Shown one piece after another: positions 294 through 64,000 of a stretch of DNA of 64,000 nt. The notes beneath the pieces are model-generated. The model was given only the letters and a program-made list of their open reading frames with translations, was not told the DNA's origin and made no database searches. The translations under genes and the position numbers were made by a program. How positions within the stretch are numbered: position 1 is the stretch's first letter; every line of letters begins with the position of its first letter. The stretch is from Tubulanus polymorphus (taxonomy: Eukaryota; Animalia; Nemertea), in the NCBI RefSeq assembly GCF_964204645.1, contig NC_134032.1:15984275-16048274 (forward strand), given 5' to 3'.

Positions 294-422
294 GGCCCAG
301 TTTCACGAAAAAGTTTAACTCAAATTTTTGGTGTAATTGCCATTGGTTACTTCATGTTTTCAATGAGGACAACAATTCAAACTAAACCATTTTAGGCTTA
401 AACTTTTTCGTGAAACTCGGCC
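294..422. mobile_element. MITE family A (PIF/Harbinger-like); second copy at ~1859-2004 in opposite orientation
   Basis: TIR GGCCCAGTTTCACGAAAAAGTTTAA / TTAAACTTTTTCGTGAAACTCGGCC, flanked by CAG on both sides. Confidence 0.75.
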
Positions 423-425
423 CAG

Positions 426-552
426 GGGTCGATTGCTCAAAAGTTGGTTAGAGTTAACCAGTGGATAGTTGATATGGTGACAGTTGAAATTTCATTGTTA
501 CTATGGTATTTAACGGCCGGTTATCTTTAACCAACTTTTCAGCAACTGGCCC
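426..552. mobile_element. MITE family B; other copies at ~11914-12045, 33948-34068, 35870-36000, 50470-50600, partial 39860-39890
   Basis: TIR GGGTCGATTGCTCAAAAGTTGGTTA / TAACCAACTTTTCAGCAACTGGCCC, CAG flanks, shared core CATTGTTACTATGGTA. Confidence 0.75.
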
Positions 553-1261
553 CAGACCTTGTTACGGTCCGTTGTTTGAGGAATAACGGCTGGATACTAG
601 CCTAGATTCTATATTATGTTTGGATGAGTTATTAATTTGAAAACCTCATATTTATTTCCCCAATTTCTGCTGAAAAATAAAATCTCCATTCTTTGTGCTA
701 TAATTATTTATTTATTTATTTATAAATCACCTTTTATTGTCTCTATTGATGGTGGTACTCGTCGTATCCGTATTGTAGTTTTTGATAGGTTGATATTTTT
801 GCGTAACTTTATTATATTCGTAGGCACAATATTTTTGTTATTTTATCAGTTATAATGGATCTTTGGGTTCGAATAAATACACATTCAATATAGGTACATA
901 CTTGGATTTCATTTCTGGCTGGGTTTCATCAGAAGTGCGCGAATTTGTTGATTTTTGCAATAGGATGGATGAGGATGAAATTGTTCGTGGTCATCCTTAT
1001 GGACCCATTCCCTTTTCCTCTATGTATTTCATTCCTATAGCTCTTTATACTGAATCTACTTGTTTTGTTTTTAACATTCTCCGTTCATTTCGGCAACTTA
1101 TGAAAGAAAATCTGTGATAAACATTTATAAAATCTGATGTGCACTTTAAACAGATGAGTTTGATTTCATGTCCAAAACGAGAGACACGAAATTTGGACAT
1201 TTTGACTCGATGATTACCCTATACACTCGTTGCGTGTAATGTCAAATAGATTTGGTGCCCA

Positions 1262-1476: not shown

Positions 1477-2499
1477 CCACACGAGTCTCATCAGAGATCA
1501 GAGATAGCTGAAACTTTCTCAGCCTCCATTAGTTATCACGTTCTCCATCTGAAGTTTTAGTCCCACCAACTATGTCTCTACAGTAGATGTCACCAGCAGG
1601 GTTTGGTGTAAAGGGGATTTTCAAATCGAAGAAATTGGTTTTGTCTGGCCGATAAAGGTCGAGCCAAAATACATGTGGAGCCGGTTGACATTAGGACTGC
1701 AGGACTCTCTACTCTAAAAGCCAGCAATGTGATGTAAAGCGCTTGTTATGCTCTTTATGGGAACGATTTTGCAGCTGTTAGATTTTGGTAAACTGTTTAG
1801 TCAGTGATCTGATCACCTCTCAGGCCCTTCCACTCCGTCTCGCTTGTTTAATTATCAGAGCCCGGTTTCACGAAAAAGTTTAAACCTAAAACGGTTAAGT
1901 TTGAATTGTTGTCCTCATTGAAAACATAAAGTTACCATTGGCAATTACACCAAAAATTAAACTTCTCAAAGTTTTAAAATAAAACTTTTTTGTGTAACTG
2001 GGGCCAGGGCTATTCTAAAGCTTGTCTATTTTTGGATTTCGAAATTGTGAGAAACCAAGCTTTTTCTGGCATAGTTTGGTGAGCATAATCGAGGCCATAA
2101 ATTCGACTTTTTGATTATAAGGGTTTTTATGGCATTTACCATTTTATTTCTTAAACGTTGAACCATCAGTAGGTCTGTTCAAACAACCTATATGTAATAA
2201 ATTTACAAAATGCCCACACAATGCAATAAATATTTGGTGATACGGAAATCTAATCTGGTCATTCGATGATAAATGATGACATAAAACTAGTATATTAACT
2301 TCTGGAAATATCGTCGCTGATATTCGAATCCATCGGTTTCGTTAGACGACGATTCTAGTTCGACTGCAGATTGTCTGTTGTTCCTATTGGTATCAAGTAA
2401 GTAAAACTCCAGAATATCGGTTTAGAATGAAGCTTGATTATTTGTGTTTTAGAAATTTCGAAAGGTGTCTAATTCCAACAGGAATTCAACAGGTTCTAA

Positions 2500-2724
2500 T
2501 AGCCGATTTCGGGTGCCATGAAAACATAGGAAATAGTGAAAGTTGATTCATTAAAATGATAGTCTCTTTTTTCTTATACAACTAGACTAGAATTAAAATC
2601 TTTACAATTTTTCAGAAAATAATGTGGTATATGGTCATTTCATAATATAGTCAATTCAATACCAAAAATCACGTAGCTTATGTGCTATCCTAAAAAACAG
2701 TTATGGCACCCGAATACGGTGGTA
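2500..2724. mobile_element. MITE-like element
   Basis: Inverted termini around TTCGGGTGCCAT (~2507-2519) and ATGGCACCCGAA (~2703-2714). Confidence 0.45.
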
Positions 2725-3173
2725 AAAATGAAATCGCGTCACACTTAACGTACACGTTCGCCATCGCATTGAACTTTCGAACAACTTCAACTCCTGCGCT
2801 CTGTTTCAAAGATGTGATAGAAAACTAGTTCCTGGGAATATTTTGAAATTCGTCATCAGTTATAACCACGGTTTCTCATTGTCACTACCAGGTTCAGATT
2901 GAGGATTTATCCCTAGGGGTAACTTTGATACCCAGTCTATGAAACCGGGCCTGGATTTTATGAATAACTGAAGAAGTTTATTGAGAAATTTATTCTTAAA
3001 TGAACATATTCTGAAAATGGATTCGTTTAAATTGGTTTTGACCGTGACAAATCCCAATACGCGTGAATTCATCGTAATTTAGGAAGCTTATTCGAATAAG
3101 ATGAAAATAAAACGATGCTATGATATTTTCAACCCCCTTATTTAACGAAAGGTGTTTACTGGGAAAAAGAAAA

Positions 3174-4674
3174 ATGGTCGCCAGGTCGCTAAGCGTCGTA
3201 GCTATTGTTCTGTTGTCGGTAATCTGGGTCAATGCCAAGGCCGTTGACGAGCAGCAGGTGAGTCTCGACTGTTCGATACATATTCCATAGGTATTGTTGC
3301 CGTTTTGTAAAATTCACAAAAAAAGATTAATCAATTAAAAGTTCTTTGTTTGATTCGAGTTGTGAAACTAATCATTGTGTATTATTTTTTTTTCCAGTTT
3401 GAAAGCGAGGCGCATTCGCTTACTGATTTAGAAGGGTTAACAGCGGCAGGTCAGCGAGGTAAGCAAAGTGAAAGGGCTCGGAACAAACAAGATCGTTAGG
3501 ACGGAAGAAAATACACACCCGCAATTGTAAACATAAACTAAGAGAGTAGTGACGTTTTGACTCGATTCTATGAGACATTTTCAGAAACTAAGACACTAGT
3601 GACGTTTTGACTCCCTTAGGTTCTGAAAATGTCTCATAGAATTGAGTCTAAACGTCACTACTCTCTTAGTTTCTAAAAATGTCTCATAGAATTGAGTCTA
3701 AACGTCACTACCCTCTTAGTTTCTGAAAATGTCTCATAGAATCGAGTCTTAACGTCACTACTCTCTTAGTTTCTGAAAATGTCTCATAGAATCGAGTCTA
3801 AACGTCACTACTCTCTTAGTTTCTGAAAATGTCTCATAGAATCGAGTCTAAACGTCAATACTCTCTTAGTTTCTGAAAATGTCTCATAGAATTGAGTCTA
3901 AACGTCAATACTCTCTTAGTTTCTGAAAATGTCTCATAGAATTGAGTCTAAACGTCAATACTCTCTTAGTTTCTGAAAATGTCTCATAGAATTGAGTCTA
4001 AACGTCAATACTCTCTTAGTTTCGGAAAATGTCTCATAGAATTGAGTCTAAACGTCACTACCCTCTCTTAGTCTCGCTTCAAAATGTGGTGTTTTCCTTC
4101 AAGTGAATTATGCACAGTCACTGTGGTCTATGGAAACCAATAGTAGTTAGGACTTACGCTTAAGACCTTCATTCTCGAACACCGCGAATCAACAACTTTA
4201 GATTTTTATAGTTTATATTTTTTTCTACCAGAAGTCAGACACGATCGGGAACCCTCAAATTTCGAGAAAAAGCATGTAGTGATGATAAACGACGTCATAA
4301 CTCTCAAACTAAATGACCCTAGCAAATGGCAGAAAGACATGACGTCGCGGCTATCAAAAAGTCCCGCGAATCATAGGTTCAACAATTCATTGATTGTAGT
4401 CAAAGATAGGCACCAGCGCAATCAACTAATGGCGGAAAGGTCAGCACTAACGCCGTACGACAACTTCACCACGACGAAAAGGTATTGCGTGGTTGAATTT
4501 CAGATTCAAAAAACCGGTAATGTAGTACAAGTCCTCCGAATTACCGTGCTCGGCGACGTGAAAGTAGAGTTGGGTCTTGATAAAAAAGGCCTGATTAATC
4601 ATTTCAATAAAATCGTTCATCCTGGAAACGGAACCTGCAAGGTGTTAAAAGATAATCGTATTCGCACAAAGTAA
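3174..4674 (+). CDS. Orphan secreted prepro-protein, 195 aa, 3 exons (3174-3257, 3398-3458, 4232-4674)
   Basis: Exon 1 is MVARSLSVVAIVLLSVIWVNAKAVDEQQ (signal peptide), ending cag|GTGAGT. Exon 2 follows ttttccAG, reads FESEAHSLTDLEGLTAAGQR and ends g|GTAAGC. Exon 3 follows ttctaccAG and joins in phase 1 to the frame of ORF 4279-4674. REVR lies at the pro/mature junction. AATAAA at 4707-4712. Confidence 0.8.
3536..4072. repeat. 50-bp tandem array (~9 copies, 3620-4072) preceded by ~1.5 inverted copies (3536-3613), in intron 2 of the orphan secreted gene
   Basis: Unit CTCTCTTAGTTTCTGAAAATGTCTCATAGAATCGAGTCTAAACGTCACTA; its reverse complement is at 3537-3613. Confidence 0.9.
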
Positions 4675-4897
4675 TGAATGAAAGCAAAGCATTGTTCAAT
4701 TCAATGAATAAAGTCAAGTGAAAAAATCGAAACTTAAGACTTAGTCTATCTGTTTATTCTAATGAGGATCATTTCGACTGCGGCCGTAAGAAAATGGTTT
4801 TGCTTATCATGGTGTATATTTTTAGGAAACGTCGGCGACACCGAAACATTTTCGGTCAATTTTAAGGATAAAACTGACTTCAATTGATATATCGCAG

Positions 4898-5007
4898 TCA
4901 ATCAATCAACAAATCAATCAATCAACAAATCAATCAATCAACAAATCAATCAATCAACAAATCAATCAACAAATCAATCAATCAACAAATCAATCAATCA
5001 ATCAACA

Positions 5008-5040
<33 letters not shown>
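4898..5040. repeat. (AATC)n microsatellite
   Basis: Seen directly; lies in the GH31 3' region. Confidence 0.95.
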
Positions 5041-5081
5041 GTAGTCTCTAGCTGTTTCTCTGCTTTATCCCAGTATAAAGG

Positions 5082-14100
<9,019 letters not shown>

Positions 14101-19950: not shown

Positions 19951-43001
<23,051 letters not shown>

Positions 43002-45526: not shown

Positions 45527-51218
<5,692 letters not shown>

Positions 51219-55200: not shown

Positions 55201-58200
55201 AACTATAGTGCGTTCTGTTATTAGTCGACTAGCTACGAAAACCGAAGTTGGCCATGGCAGCCGACAAAATCCAAGATGGCCGCTCCGATATGAAGTACAG
55301 GCAAAACGTCCTAAAATATTTAGATATTTCACACAGATTTCACAGATCAATACTTACCAATAATAGCAGATGAATAGAACGTTAGGTATAGTTGAAACCA
55401 ACAGTAGATAATCATAGTCTCTGATAAAATAGGCGATTCCTGGTAATAACATGAAACCCATAGCGAACCATCCTTGAAAGAATATACCAGTTCCAGTACG
55501 AGCAGTAGTGCCTATCATCTCCATAGCTAAATCAAAAATCAATACAAATTAAAAGTTTTATTCATAAAACCATGAACTCATAGTTTGTGATTCAGTGTCG
55601 AAGTTCTGGAGCCAGTTCCACAGTCTGGACTCAGTTCTGCAGTTCTAGAGGCAGTTTCACAGTTCTGGACCACTTCCCAAGTTCTGGAGTGCTAGTTCCA
55701 CAGTTCTAGCCCCAGTTCCACAGTTCTGAACCCGTGAGCTCTACGGTAGATAGTTAGATAACTTACACATAACGAAAGCAGTTGTGAACGCCCCGGCGGC
55801 GCTGGCTCCTGTTAACAATCTCAATAGTACGAAGCTCCAATATTCGGGCGCGAAAGCAGCGACCGCTCCTGTCAATGTCATCGATAATAAACATCCCAAC
55901 AGCGTCTTTATTCGACCGAATCTAAAAACGAAATTGTTTTAGGAAAACTGATTTTTTTCGTCGTCAGATATCAAAATTTACTTCCTTTCTTGGAGTCGTC
56001 ACAGTTCCATCCATAGTCGCGGCTGAGACTTCAAGACCAGTCCAAGCTCGTTTCAATTCTATAGAAAATCGAACAACTTAAGGATGGTCTAAACTCATTT
56101 TGGTTCTATAACCAATCTAACAACTTAAGACCAGTCTAAGCTCATTTTGGTTCTATAACCAATCTAACAACTTAAAACCAGTCTAAGCTCATTTTGGTTC
56201 TATAATCAATCTAACAACTTAAGACCAGTCTAAGCTCATTTTAGTTCTATAACCAATCTAACAACTTAAGACCAGTCTAAACTCATTCTGGTTCTATAAC
56301 CAATCTAACAACTTAAGACCAGTCTAAACTCATTTTAGTTCTATAGGCCACATAGCCACTGAATATCTGTTTTAAGATTTCCACTTTAGGGCGTAAGTCT
56401 CGACTTAGTAAGGGAGTCTGATCTATGGTGTATGGCTATCTATCTATTGATTTCAATCAATAATGTGCATCTATAAAACCGTTTTACCGTTTTACCTGTC
56501 AGATATGCCTCCAAATATGATAGCGCCCAACATGTAACCAATCATATAGATCGTCTGCGACATCGGAAGCAGCCATTGTTTACTGCAGACGAGATTCCAC
56601 TGAAAACAACAACAGTAGTGTATTTTTAACTGTGGAAAAATGATTGCCCTTTATAGAATTGAGAAATGTCCACGCTGATAGTCACAACACCAGACTGGTC
56701 ACAAGTCACTACGTCTGATTGGACACTAGTCACCACCACACCTGACTGGTCACCAGTCCTAGTCTAGTCTCCACAATGACCAGACTAACTTACAAACTTT
56801 ATCGTTCGCTACTGGTCTATGGCCTAGTGGTTGGCATGCTCGCCTGACATACCGGAGATCCCAGATTCGAGGCTGGGGTTAGGGTTATAAGGTAGTTAGT
56901 ATTATCGATATCAGTAGGGCATTGCCATAGTCTGATTGGTTTTTTTGCTGAATAATAAAGGCACTTTTTATTGATTCAAAAAAATTGAATTCATCTTATG
57001 AATTCATCTTCATCTTATTCATCGGGAATTAATGGGTGTTTCATTTATTACTGTGCATATGGAACTGCCTGGGACACCCTGCACAGGTGTGATATCAAGC
57101 CGTCACGCTCAAAATTCGCCTGTGAGTGCTCAAAACAATATGTTTAATGGGTCTTGAAATAGTTAACGCGTAAAATTCTGCGTAACGCAACTGAATATAT
57201 CCGGTTATGTAAATACGACAGGCTTCTAAAAACGGGTAAAGGGGCCACAACTCATTCACAGTAATGTACACATGTCATAAGGATTTGAGAATAAATACAC
57301 AATTCGGAAAAATTGTGTCAAATACATCTCGTCCAAAATGATGTAGGTTTAAGCTGTTTCGTTTAATGCGTCGCGACCTAAAGTTACGATTCTGTGGCCT
57401 GAAACTGGTTTTTTTAGTGAGTTAGGGCCAGCAATACTTATATTAACTATATACTTTGAAAGGTACAGACGAAACCCGATCCAACTATAGACTAGAAAAA
57501 AAAACGAATCCTATAGTCCAATTCAATTAACTAAAGTTTGATCTCACTTTTTTCAGTGGTCAACTTAAGACCAGTCTAAACTCATTTTAGTTCTATAACC
57601 AATCTAACAACTTAAGACCAGTCTAAACTCATTTTGGTTCTATAATCAATCTAACAACTTACGACCAGTGTAAATTCATTTTGGTTATATGACCAATCTA
57701 ACAACTTAAGACCAGTCTAAGCTCATTTTGGTTCTATAACCAATCTAACAACCTAAGACCAGTCTAAACTCATTTTGGTTCTCTAACCAATCTAACAACT
57801 AAAGAAGATCAGATAGGCCCTATACGGCAACAATTTGATTGTGGAACTCTCTGGTTTCTGGTGTTTTGGAGGATACGGATAGTGTTTTACGACACGACGG
57901 TTATTATGTGTATTCCGGTAAATGACGGGAATTGTTGCGCACACTACTGATAAACGCGACGTTAATAAAAACAACGACACGAGTTCAGTGGTGAAAATCA
58001 CAATGAAATAGAGTGCGGCGCTGTAATTAACTCGCTGTAATTAGGGGTGTATTTATTTACGCGTTTGCTGTGAAACTGGGTCACATTGACCTGCATTTTT
58101 AAAGCCACACTAAAAATTGCTACTTTTCGTGTATTTCTGTGAGAGCCAAAGTGTGAAAAACAGAAATCGAGGCGTGAGAGTTCTACATTAGATTTGGCGG

Positions 58201-59298
58201 CGCAGTCCTTTTACGAAAACTGATCATCATAACTTCACCCAGGACCCGGTTCCACAGTTTTAACAGTCTTTTGGGGGTACAGGGTCCAGACAGCTGGAGG
58301 GGTACAGGGTACAGACAGCTGAGGGGAACAGGGTCAAGACAGCAGATTGTCTGAGGGGGTACAGGGTCCACACAGCTGAAGGGGTACAGGGTACAGACAG
58401 CTGAGGGGGTACAGGGTCAAGACAGCAGATTGTCTGAGGGGGTACAGTGTCCAGACAGCAGATTGTCTGAGGGGGTACAGGGTCAAGACAGCTGAGGGGG
58501 TGCAGGGTACAGACAGCTGAGGGGGTACAGTGTCCAGACAGCTGAAGGGGTACAGTGTCAAGAAAGCAGATTTTCTGAGGGGGTACAGTGTCCAGACAGC
58601 AGATTGTCTGAGGGGGTACAGTGTCCAGACAGCAGATTGTCTGACGGGGTTAAGTGTCCAGACAGCAGATTGTCTGACGGGGTACAGGGTACAGACAGCA
58701 GATTGTCTGAGGGGGTACACAGGGTAAACAGCAGATTGTCTGAGGGGGTACAGTGTCCAGACAGCAGATTGTCTGACGGGGTTAAGTGTCCAGACAGCAG
58801 ATTGTCTGACGGGGTACAGGGTACAGACAGCGGATTGTCTGAGGAGGTGATGGATGGTGGGAAGGCAGGGGGCGCTGCGATACATACCTCGGATCCTATA
58901 GTTGATGATATAACGCTTGTATCGTGTTCCCAGCCGTTACTACACCAGCCCTGCGCCAACAACGTCTCATTAACAGCGATACTGCTATTAAAATCTGTAA
59001 TGGCGCTATAATTTCTGAAATACTGTTTACACCGACTGTATCGCTCTACGCCTTGTTTGGTCTCTTTCGGGATGCTCTGTCTGAGGCGGTCTTCGAGACT
59101 GACGGTTGACGAATTCAAATGGTCGAACTCGGGTATGTAACACCAATGGTCGAGATCGGCCGCCAGGAAGACGACGGCTAGATTCTGTAGGCCGACAGGT
59201 ATGCCGACAAGTCCGACGAGCACGTAGAATAACTTTTGGTACAGTCCGAACCCCCCGATTTCAACCAAAACCTGATCGAAATCGATGACGGTTTTCAT
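52246..59298 (-). CDS. SLC22-family organic cation transporter (MFS)
   Basis: Exons: 59298-58888 ([16 protein letters not shown]...HWC...WEHD...TIGSE), 56599-56496 (WNLVC; 104 bp), 55921-55767 (155 bp), 55526-55358 (169 bp), ~54788-54650 (PESPRWL; donor uncertain), ~54497-54372 ([10 protein letters not shown]), ~54088-53872, ~53181-52999 (AELFPTVVR), 52582-52446 (LLLPET), 52306-52246. PolyA signal on the minus strand near 52176. Confidence 0.93.
53344..53763. mobile_element. ~420-bp imperfect palindrome (foldback element) in an SLC22 intron
   Basis: ATTGCAGAAA...CCTCGGGATCACTTTTCTACAAATACTCAT is mirrored by ATGAGTATTTGTAGAAAAGTGATCCCGAGG...TTTCTGCAAT. Confidence 0.85.
58270..58845. repeat. 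33-bp (and shorter) tandem array at the start of SLC22 intron 1
   Basis: Unit GGGTACAGTGTCCAGACAGCAGATTGTCTGAGG. Confidence 0.92.
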
Positions 59299-62489: not shown

Positions 62490-63541
62490 GACCAACTTCA
62501 CGCCAGAAACTGAATAAACTCTACATTGCATTTTTCCTACGAATGTTTTTATTTGTAAAAAAAAATCGAAATAAAACCAAAGCAGAAAATAATTAAAATT
62601 TGAATAACGTTTTTGTTTACTCAAAACGAGAGGATTGTTTCTTGTTGTTAAGTCATGTTACCTCGCAGAGTTGAGACCGGTTCGTTCGAGTAACCTGACG
62701 ATACACACGCGCACACAAACACACTGACCGGTATCAAGAGTCCCACATTTTTGCGAAGTCCCCATTATGGAAACTTCAATGCCAACGACCTAGAGCTTAC
62801 GACTAATCAATTTGAACAGAAGGGGGTGGTGTACGCAGCAACAATGTAACTTGTAATCCGTTTTTGAAATCTTCAGTAAAATATCGACCTAAATCTTAAC
62901 CTTTGAATTCTTTGACGCATGGTTCGTGATTGGAGGTATATTAAGAGGACCAAAATAAATTCACAAACAGTTACAGTGCCAGTTATACGGAAATCCACAC
63001 GCACACACGCGCGTGGTCAACGTTTTGAAAATGTAAGTTTACGAAGCTATAAACGATTGAATTGAACAAAAATTGATAAAAAAGGCTAAAAGCAGTTGCG
63101 AAGATACTCGACATCCACCGCGTACCGGAGTAATCGCTCAATAGTTCAAAGATACGAAGTTGTTGAGTAAAGTAACCGAAAATTTGCTCAAAATATATAA
63201 AACCTTTAATTTAATCAACAACTTTACACTGAGTTATTGCGGGGTTTTTCTGAGTAAAGGCGTCTTTATAAATATCATTGGAAGTTTTCTTTGTTGCTTT
63301 CGTTATTTTCTTGTGTCACATGCGTGGAAAAATTGTTAATGTTGCAGAAATAATTTTGTAAATTTATTGTGGCTGTTCGTATGCGGCGTTTCAGCTTGAA
63401 AATGAAAAAATTGGGGATTTAGTTTGTTTGAAAGGGAAGATGTTTCCGGTAGTGCCCGTTTTAATGTGTATTCCCAAGAATTTCGATGATAAACTAGGAA
63501 TGCGTGATTATAATCAATATGATTTTTGTTTTAAAATCAGG

Positions 63542-64000
63542 ATGAAAGTTTCCATCACCATTGCTGTGATAAGTTTGACAGTTGTGTTCACCACTTCTTG
63601 GGCCACAGGTAAATTAGTTTATTATTCGGATCGTCTTTCGCGTGTTTACAACATGAATTCCTTGTTGATTGTTTTTATTTGATTTTATTCTCAGCCCCGG
63701 AAGAAACGACAGATGAGTTGAAAATGAAGCAGGCTGCGGCTGCTTGGTTGGATTTGACGAGACGCATTTCTGTCACCGTGCCGGCGGAAAACCGGCGTCT
63801 CGAAGCCTTGGAGGACCTGACGAGACGCGCCTCTGGTGAACCGCCGGAAGAAAATAGTCTCGAAGCCTTGGAGGACCTGGCGAGACACGCCTCTGGTGAA
63901 CCGCCGGAGGAAAATAGTCTCGAAGCCTTGGAGGACCTGACCAGACGCGCCTCTGGTCAACCGCCGGAGGAAAATAGTCTCGAAGCCTTGGAAGACCTGA
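63542..64000 (+). CDS. Secreted repetitive peptide precursor, 5' part only (exons 63542-63608 and 63695 to beyond 64000)
   Basis: Signal peptide MKVSITIAVISLTVVFTTSWAT, phase-1 intron 63609-63694, then an open frame APEETTDELKMKQAAAAWLDLTRRISVTVPAENRRLEALEDLTRRASGEPPEENSLEALEDLARHASGEPPEENSLEALEDLTRRASGQPPEENSLEALEDL running off the window. Confidence 0.8.

Follow-up and report, generated by a model that had tools for sequence, protein, structure and literature searches.

A candidate two-exon gene in the nemertean Tubulanus polymorphus and its predicted product, a repeat-built precursor of acidic, non-amidated peptides

At the 3′ end of a 64,000-nt stretch of the Tubulanus polymorphus genome (G000:C8:15984275-16048274, in a 268-Mb assembly of 77 contigs; the whole of this stretch is called the window here), a signal-peptide-like N-terminus is followed by 60-bp repeats that are punctuated by pairs of basic residues and run off the end of the available sequence. 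This raises the question of whether the repeats belong to a gene at all and, if they do, whether the encoded protein is a precursor cut into many small peptides, an acidic protein that acts intact, or a pro-region in front of a single active product. We analysed the locus in the window together with the 10 kb adjoining its 3′ end (L004, in which a position is the window position minus 63399).

Gene model and repeat array

The gene that we propose has two exons (Table 1) and is apparently unlisted in any database searched. Its start codon has an A at −3, and the translation of exon 1 has a lysine as second residue, an uncharged hydrophobic core of 14 residues and then an S-W-A small-residue motif. 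Judged by eye, such an N-terminus is signal-peptide-like, with a predicted cleavage after approximately residue 21 that fits the −3/−1 rule. The intron has a CAG/GTAAAT donor, a branch-point-like TTGAT approximately 25 nt 5′ of the acceptor, and an acceptor that consists of a pyrimidine (T-rich) tract and CAG. The original prediction had spliced the sequence between positions 63608 and 63695 to obtain a signal peptide and in-frame repeats; both are indeed present in the sequence, the sites are consensus GT-AG sites, and the junction completes a split alanine codon and keeps the reading frame into the repeats. If the transcript were left unspliced, the exon 1 frame would meet a stop codon within the intron. 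In addition, the upstream sequence and the intron have GC contents of 32% and 29%, against 58% for exon 2 and 42% for the DNA downstream, and the composition steps coincide with both of the proposed splice sites. We also observed a good splice-acceptor-like site (T-rich tract and CAG) just 5′ of the ATG and a second in-frame ATG approximately 100 nt further 5′, so that an untranslated upstream exon is possible.

The early stop or frameshift just past the window, to which the original prediction had considered its own model vulnerable, does not occur: the frame stays open through the whole array as far as a TAG, which is followed by an AATAAA. Because these two signals follow directly, a downstream exon is not needed, and the complete coding sequence (67 + 563 nt) specifies a protein of approximately 209 residues.

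Table 1. Coordinates of the candidate gene and of neighbouring features in the window and in the adjoining 10 kb (L004)
Feature	Window position	L004 position	Strand	Details
Second in-frame ATG	63440		+	5′ of the precursor ATG
Splice-acceptor-like site	63520-63541		+	T-rich tract and CAG
Exon 1	63542-63608		+	ATG at 63542; 67 nt; 22 codons and first base of split Ala codon
Intron	63609-63694		+	86 nt; phase 1; GT-AG; donor at 63609, last base of acceptor 63694
Exon 2	63695-64000, on to window-equivalent 64257	296-858	+	186 residues and stop
Two degenerate leading units	63697-63828		+	approx. 23 and 21 residues
60-bp tandem array	63797-64000, on to window-equivalent 64163	398-764	+	found by TRF
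Stop codon		856-858	+	TAG; 257 nt past window end
AATAAA		930-935	+	72 nt 3′ of stop
Trefoil-domain ORF	12644-13294		−	exon-sized; two trefoil (P-type) domains, Pfam E = 1.4e-21
Receptor-like open frame	41536-42198		+	rhodopsin-family GPCR match (7tm_1, E = 1.2e-22); approx. 21 kb upstream of precursor gene
607-aa ORF	48472-50295			spurious; no Pfam match
CT-rich low-complexity tract	48909-50259			1.35 kb; CCTCTC-type; GC skew −0.4
Arrays of 47-bp unit	56028-56345 and 57561-57805			two separate arrays
33-bp minisatellite	58319-58848			open in several frames
ORF entering 33-bp minisatellite	58558-59298		−	ATG-initiated; weak chance Pfam match only
T-arm-box stretches		1540-1615 and 2290-2375		tRNA-like; GGTTCGAATCC and GGTTCGAGTC types
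Degenerate TTAGGG-like repeats		approx. 2200-2285		between the two T-arm-box stretches
52-bp satellite		2608-6545 (G000:C8:16050281-16054218)		1.75 kb downstream; 76 copies; 96% identity; 207-bp higher-order period
Further C/T-rich tracts		6791-6903 and 8443-9028		similar to the tract at 48909-50259

TRF found the predicted 60-bp units within the window (3.4 copies, score 366), and on the extended locus it reported 6.1 copies with 95% matches and a score of 664. At the protein level the whole pro-protein resolves into two degenerate leading units, five full units of 20 residues and one divergent final unit, and all differences in length between units are multiples of 3. Both leading units end in L-(D/E)-D-L-T-R-R, and the second of them, with its extra internal RR, is the 21-aa degenerate unit that the original prediction had placed ahead of the repeats; to this we can add that the stretch in front of it is itself another degenerate unit with the same L-D-L-T-R-R end. 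These older units have kept their RR, whereas the remainder has diverged. The single unit said to carry RH instead of RR is also found, and this variant arose from RR through a CpG transition. The final unit departs from the repeat after its eleventh residue and continues as a more hydrophobic stretch, beyond which the C-terminal end consists of KRRK, four residues, KR, five residues and the TAG, so that the last unit and the tail together comprise 42 residues. The complete ORF thus holds seven RR, one RH, one KRRK and one KR, and all 18 of its arginines and three of its five lysines lie within dibasic or tetrabasic motifs; as the units are approximately 95% identical in DNA, however, the repeated RR sites amount to approximately four independent observations and not to ten.

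Gene or minisatellite

The window is rich in minisatellites, with more than a dozen arrays (periods of 15, 25, 26, 33, 47, 76 and 141 bp) in the 23 kb between positions 40000 and 63000, and a 60-bp array is therefore unremarkable in itself. The locus could accordingly be non-functional, a GC-rich minisatellite that happens to be open behind a signal-like ORF and at most a very young proto-gene. Besides the many arrays of the window and the 76-copy satellite downstream, this explanation can draw on the similarity of the units, which at 95% implies a recent array, on the three of six frames (two of them on the minus strand) that are open through it, and on the searches described below, in which no homologue was found and the product was missing from the protein collection. 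The pattern of substitution fits it as well, since synonymous change is not in excess: the five full units differ at seven sites, three synonymous and four residue-changing (RR to RH included), numbers too small to reveal selection in either direction. Purifying selection is therefore not demonstrable among these units, a point that also counts against the reading as a peptide precursor.

Several features of the locus argue that it is nonetheless a gene. An ATG, a signal-like peptide, a consensus donor and a phase-matched acceptor at the very start of the ORF are together improbable in a minisatellite, and to these are added the composition steps, the degenerate flanking units that stay in frame, and a stop followed by AATAAA. 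The approximately 75 codons beside the near-identical units (44 leading and approximately 31 trailing) contain no stop, for which the estimated chance, given the base composition, is approximately 0.01, and by a rough estimate the full combination of features would arise by chance with a probability of at most 1e-3. Furthermore, neither of the two open minus-strand frames has an ATG. On this evidence we regard a non-functional or nascent ORF as improbable.

A distinct possibility, that the 60-bp unit occurs as a dispersed non-coding repeat, had been put forward in the original prediction as an argument against itself. All six matches to the 21-nt core of the repeat in the 268-Mb genome fall in this locus (the reversed control gave 0), and with the core confined to one locus the unit is not a dispersed element.

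The open frames on the opposite strand also allow the array to be read as an exon of a minus-strand gene, and one of the two extends for approximately 240 codons across the array. However, neither has a signal or a domain any more than it has a start codon, and the start, the intron, the stop and the poly(A) signal are all on the plus strand. A real sense frame commonly brings with it an open frame on the antisense strand, and we consider coding by the minus strand to be extremely unlikely.

It is also conceivable, although we think it rather doubtful, that a 60-bp minisatellite has expanded in frame behind a signal-peptide exon and that we see a peptide-precursor gene early in its origin. The product of such a gene would be a multi-copy secreted acidic peptide, perhaps a hormone, a pheromone or a defence peptide, that belongs to one lineage and has no ancestor elsewhere.

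The surrounding DNA has features of its own (Table 1). The trefoil and rhodopsin-type GPCR exons mark the DNA as metazoan. The trefoil domains on the minus strand are followed by residues that may be the start of a GH31 alpha-glucosidase, and the N-terminus of the ORF that runs into the 33-bp minisatellite resembles the start of an SLC22-type transporter. The 607-aa ORF is created by the CT-rich tract that it spans. In the downstream flank ARAGORN called no tRNA, and the two stretches with T-arm boxes may be remnants of tRNA-derived SINEs.

Relatives and known peptide systems

The products of exon 1 and exon 2 were used as separate queries in the search for relatives. Searches of the 268-Mb genome with the protein of either exon, the DNA and the 21-nt core found no paralogue and matched this locus alone; weak matches elsewhere in the genome were to other repeats full of stops. 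The exon 2 product has no Pfam family above the gathering threshold, and the one sub-threshold candidate, PF20512, which scored 17 bits where 23.4 is required, was dismissed as a chance match. With the exon 2 product as query, a word-index search of proteins gave 103 candidates, none at E ≤ 0.01. HMMER, run against 1.84 billion representative proteins, returned 54 matches at E ≤ 1e-3, and the five that we inspected were unrelated periodic-repeat proteins. Four of these (479-1,216 aa) were bacterial or phage-like proteins with A-S-G-x-L-D-A-L-A-D-F repeats and a leucine-rich repeat protein, and the fifth was a 212-aa protein with a different 19-residue repeat; all five were rejected as periodic or compositional matches. 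The other 49, which are long proteins with an identity of at most 43%, were taken to be likewise unrelated.

An orthologue was found in none of the collections searched: the ESM Atlas gave no usable match, and a scan of JGI metagenomes gave 222 pattern matches, none of which was confirmed. In addition, neither the product itself nor a fragment of it is in the 15-billion-protein collection, as judged by the word index and by HMMER on the 1.84 billion representatives, and the protein is therefore apparently unannotated and not recovered from public read assemblies. This absence says little about expression because a 60-bp repeat is expected to break short-read assemblers. The peptide strings of the product were also absent from the full-text literature searched. 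In the searched part of the supplementary catalogue of PMC8557429 (72 types, approximately 1,300 precursors), eight of nine motif strings did not occur, and the ninth, of five letters, occurred in a single record that is repeated in three supplementary files.

The precursor design itself is ordinary and marks a well-known kind of gene. Among the closest in design are the ND peptides (Thiel et al. 2021, PMC8557429), whose precursors, like the present gene, combine a signal peptide with many tandem acidic, non-amidated copies separated by dibasic sites, and which, again like it, are confined to some of the nemerteans and lack relatives outside them. However, the ND peptides have 4-6 residues of the H-G-D-D type and are cut at KR, whereas the units here have 18 residues, are predicted to be helical and are bounded by RR, and there is no sequence similarity between the two. 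The ND peptides were reported from heteronemerteans and not from Tubulanus (PMC8557429). Other lineage-specific families described there, namely AxxxDF, DMF and GxGH, are also unlike this product. In Lineus, mass spectrometry has confirmed that nemertean precursors are cut at dibasic sites, among them precursors that are non-amidated and lineage-specific (PMC8557429).

Precursors of the pedal peptide/orcokinin type also contain multiple copies of non-amidated, acidic peptides, of 13-20 residues with dibasic flanks. In their conserved pattern, an aromatic/Leu-Asp element lies close to the N-terminal end and Gly-Phe close to the C-terminal one. This pattern is absent from our product, and neither HMMER nor the word search matched the product to such precursors. 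The type is present in nemerteans, and its cleavage there has been confirmed by mass spectrometry (PMC8557429).

Outside these families, the granins (chromogranins, secretogranins, 7B2 and proSAAS) are also secretory, acidic (pI approximately 4.5), hydrophilic, largely unstructured and studded with dibasic sites, at which granins are cut to yield peptides. The resemblance is one of composition and site pattern only, as Pfam is blank and there is no homology; the genome's own 7B2 is at another locus, and, unlike the granins, this protein consists almost wholly of one recent 20-residue repeat. The nemertean toxins (nemertides, neurotoxin B, cytotoxin A-III and parborlysins) are secreted as well and derive from small ribbon-worm precursors, but they are cysteine-rich or cationic and lytic, whereas the product of this gene carries a strong negative charge and only one cysteine.

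Predicted fate of the product

The reading that we favour, with a probability of roughly 0.45, is that the locus is a real single-copy gene of two exons whose product we predict to be a lineage-restricted precursor of acidic, non-amidated peptides in multiple copies. The combination of signal peptide, repeated units and dibasic sites on which the original prediction was built is present, and the complete ORF continues the pattern. That prediction had left two alternatives, and the first of them, a multi-copy acidic precursor, is still the best reading; the second, in which an acidic pro-region would precede a mature toxin encoded past the window, has failed, since the complete ORF contains no cysteine-rich toxin domain and ends 257 nt further on in a tail that has neither a cysteine framework nor a recognisable domain.

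On the favoured reading, the signal peptide would be removed after approximately residue 21, and convertases of the PC1/3 or PC2 type would cut after the paired basic residues (the seven RR, KRRK and KR) in the regulated secretory pathway, after which a carboxypeptidase would trim the basic residues left by the cut. The products would then be an 18-residue acidic, non-amidated peptide in four to five identical or variant forms, one 38-residue double unit at the RH site, shorter products from the degenerate leading units (the predicted peptides ranging from 8 to 38 residues), a distinct 28-residue C-terminal variant and, from the tail, two very small peptides. Within each 18-mer a short amphipathic helix is predicted to follow a Pro-Pro cap, and the canonical 18-mer would carry a net charge of −5 to −6. 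We infer transcription, secretion and cleavage, as well as any signalling role that the products may have as hormone, neuropeptide or pheromone.

The genome contains genes for the processing enzymes that such a scheme would call for, with at least eight P_proprotein (convertase P-domain) matches over the cut-off and a 7B2 gene. The exons of the latter are approximately 95% and 76% identical to the published 7B2 of Tubulanus polymorphus and clearly less so to that of the hoplonemertean Paranemertes, which points to a tubulanid host that is not identical to the animal behind the published transcriptome. A back-translated corazonin motif was not found in the genome, possibly because an intron interrupts it or the sequence has diverged. 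Single-sequence AlphaFold2 modelling of the product (pLDDT 65.5, pTM 0.21) gave no compact or tertiary fold, only helices of approximately 15 residues that are broken at each S-G-E-P-P, and this is more in keeping with a precursor than with a folded domain.

Other observations speak against a precursor. There is no glycine before a basic pair anywhere in the complete ORF, and hence no amidation signal, nor is there a cysteine pair (the ORF has one cysteine, which belongs to a variant repeat unit and not to the tail) or any other of the usual neuropeptide hallmarks. Peptides as acidic as these are usually spacers in known precursors. In addition, RR sites are reportedly used less reliably than KR sites.

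The main alternative is a secreted acidic repeat protein that acts intact, such as a granin-like granule matrix protein, a phosphoprotein that binds calcium, or part of the mucus or of the worm's tube, and we consider this unlikely but far from negligible. In such a protein the RR pairs would simply lie on the charged side of the short amphipathic helices. With a pI of 4.43, a GRAVY of −0.99 and 24% Asp + Glu, the exon 2 product (186 aa) is hydrophilic, and this composition, together with the lack of a predicted tertiary fold and of amidation signals or other peptide hallmarks, would suit an intact acidic protein. The helical hydrophobic moment, moreover, reaches its peak in the Leu-rich half of the unit and on the stretch that includes the RR, which places the arginines inside the predicted helix. 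Each unit also has an S-x-E/D motif that is invariant and another that varies; on inspection, these resemble the motif of the Golgi casein kinase Fam20C. However, a structural protein would need neither the restriction of arginine to paired-basic motifs nor the extra KRRK...KR cluster in the non-repeat tail. Serine and threonine are too low for a mucin and N-glycosylation sequons are absent from the product, and neither granins, 7B2 nor other Pfam families were matched.

A further alternative, which we judge to be very unlikely, is that the repeats are an amplified acidic pro-region and that activity resides solely in the unique C-terminal part. It is true that the last unit diverges into a distinct and more hydrophobic helix, which has the highest AlphaFold2 confidence (block pLDDT 83-86) and is followed by the KRRK and KR sites. 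Nevertheless, the protein has neither a cysteine framework nor a mature domain of cationic or toxin-like kind, Pfam gave no match, the tail peptides after KRRK would have just 3-5 residues, and no motif match was found in the nemertean toxin transcript tables (PMC9415933).

A multi-copy precursor of acidic peptides is the interpretation that we consider most likely. Peptide genes that have two exons and are rich in repeats can escape automatic annotation and short-read assembly, and a gene without relatives is out of reach of homology-based catalogues. Should the present gene be expressed and its product processed, an unannotated and taxonomically restricted peptide family would join the signalling or secretion repertoire of nemerteans, and the locus would show that the expansion of a tandem repeat can build a multi-copy precursor.
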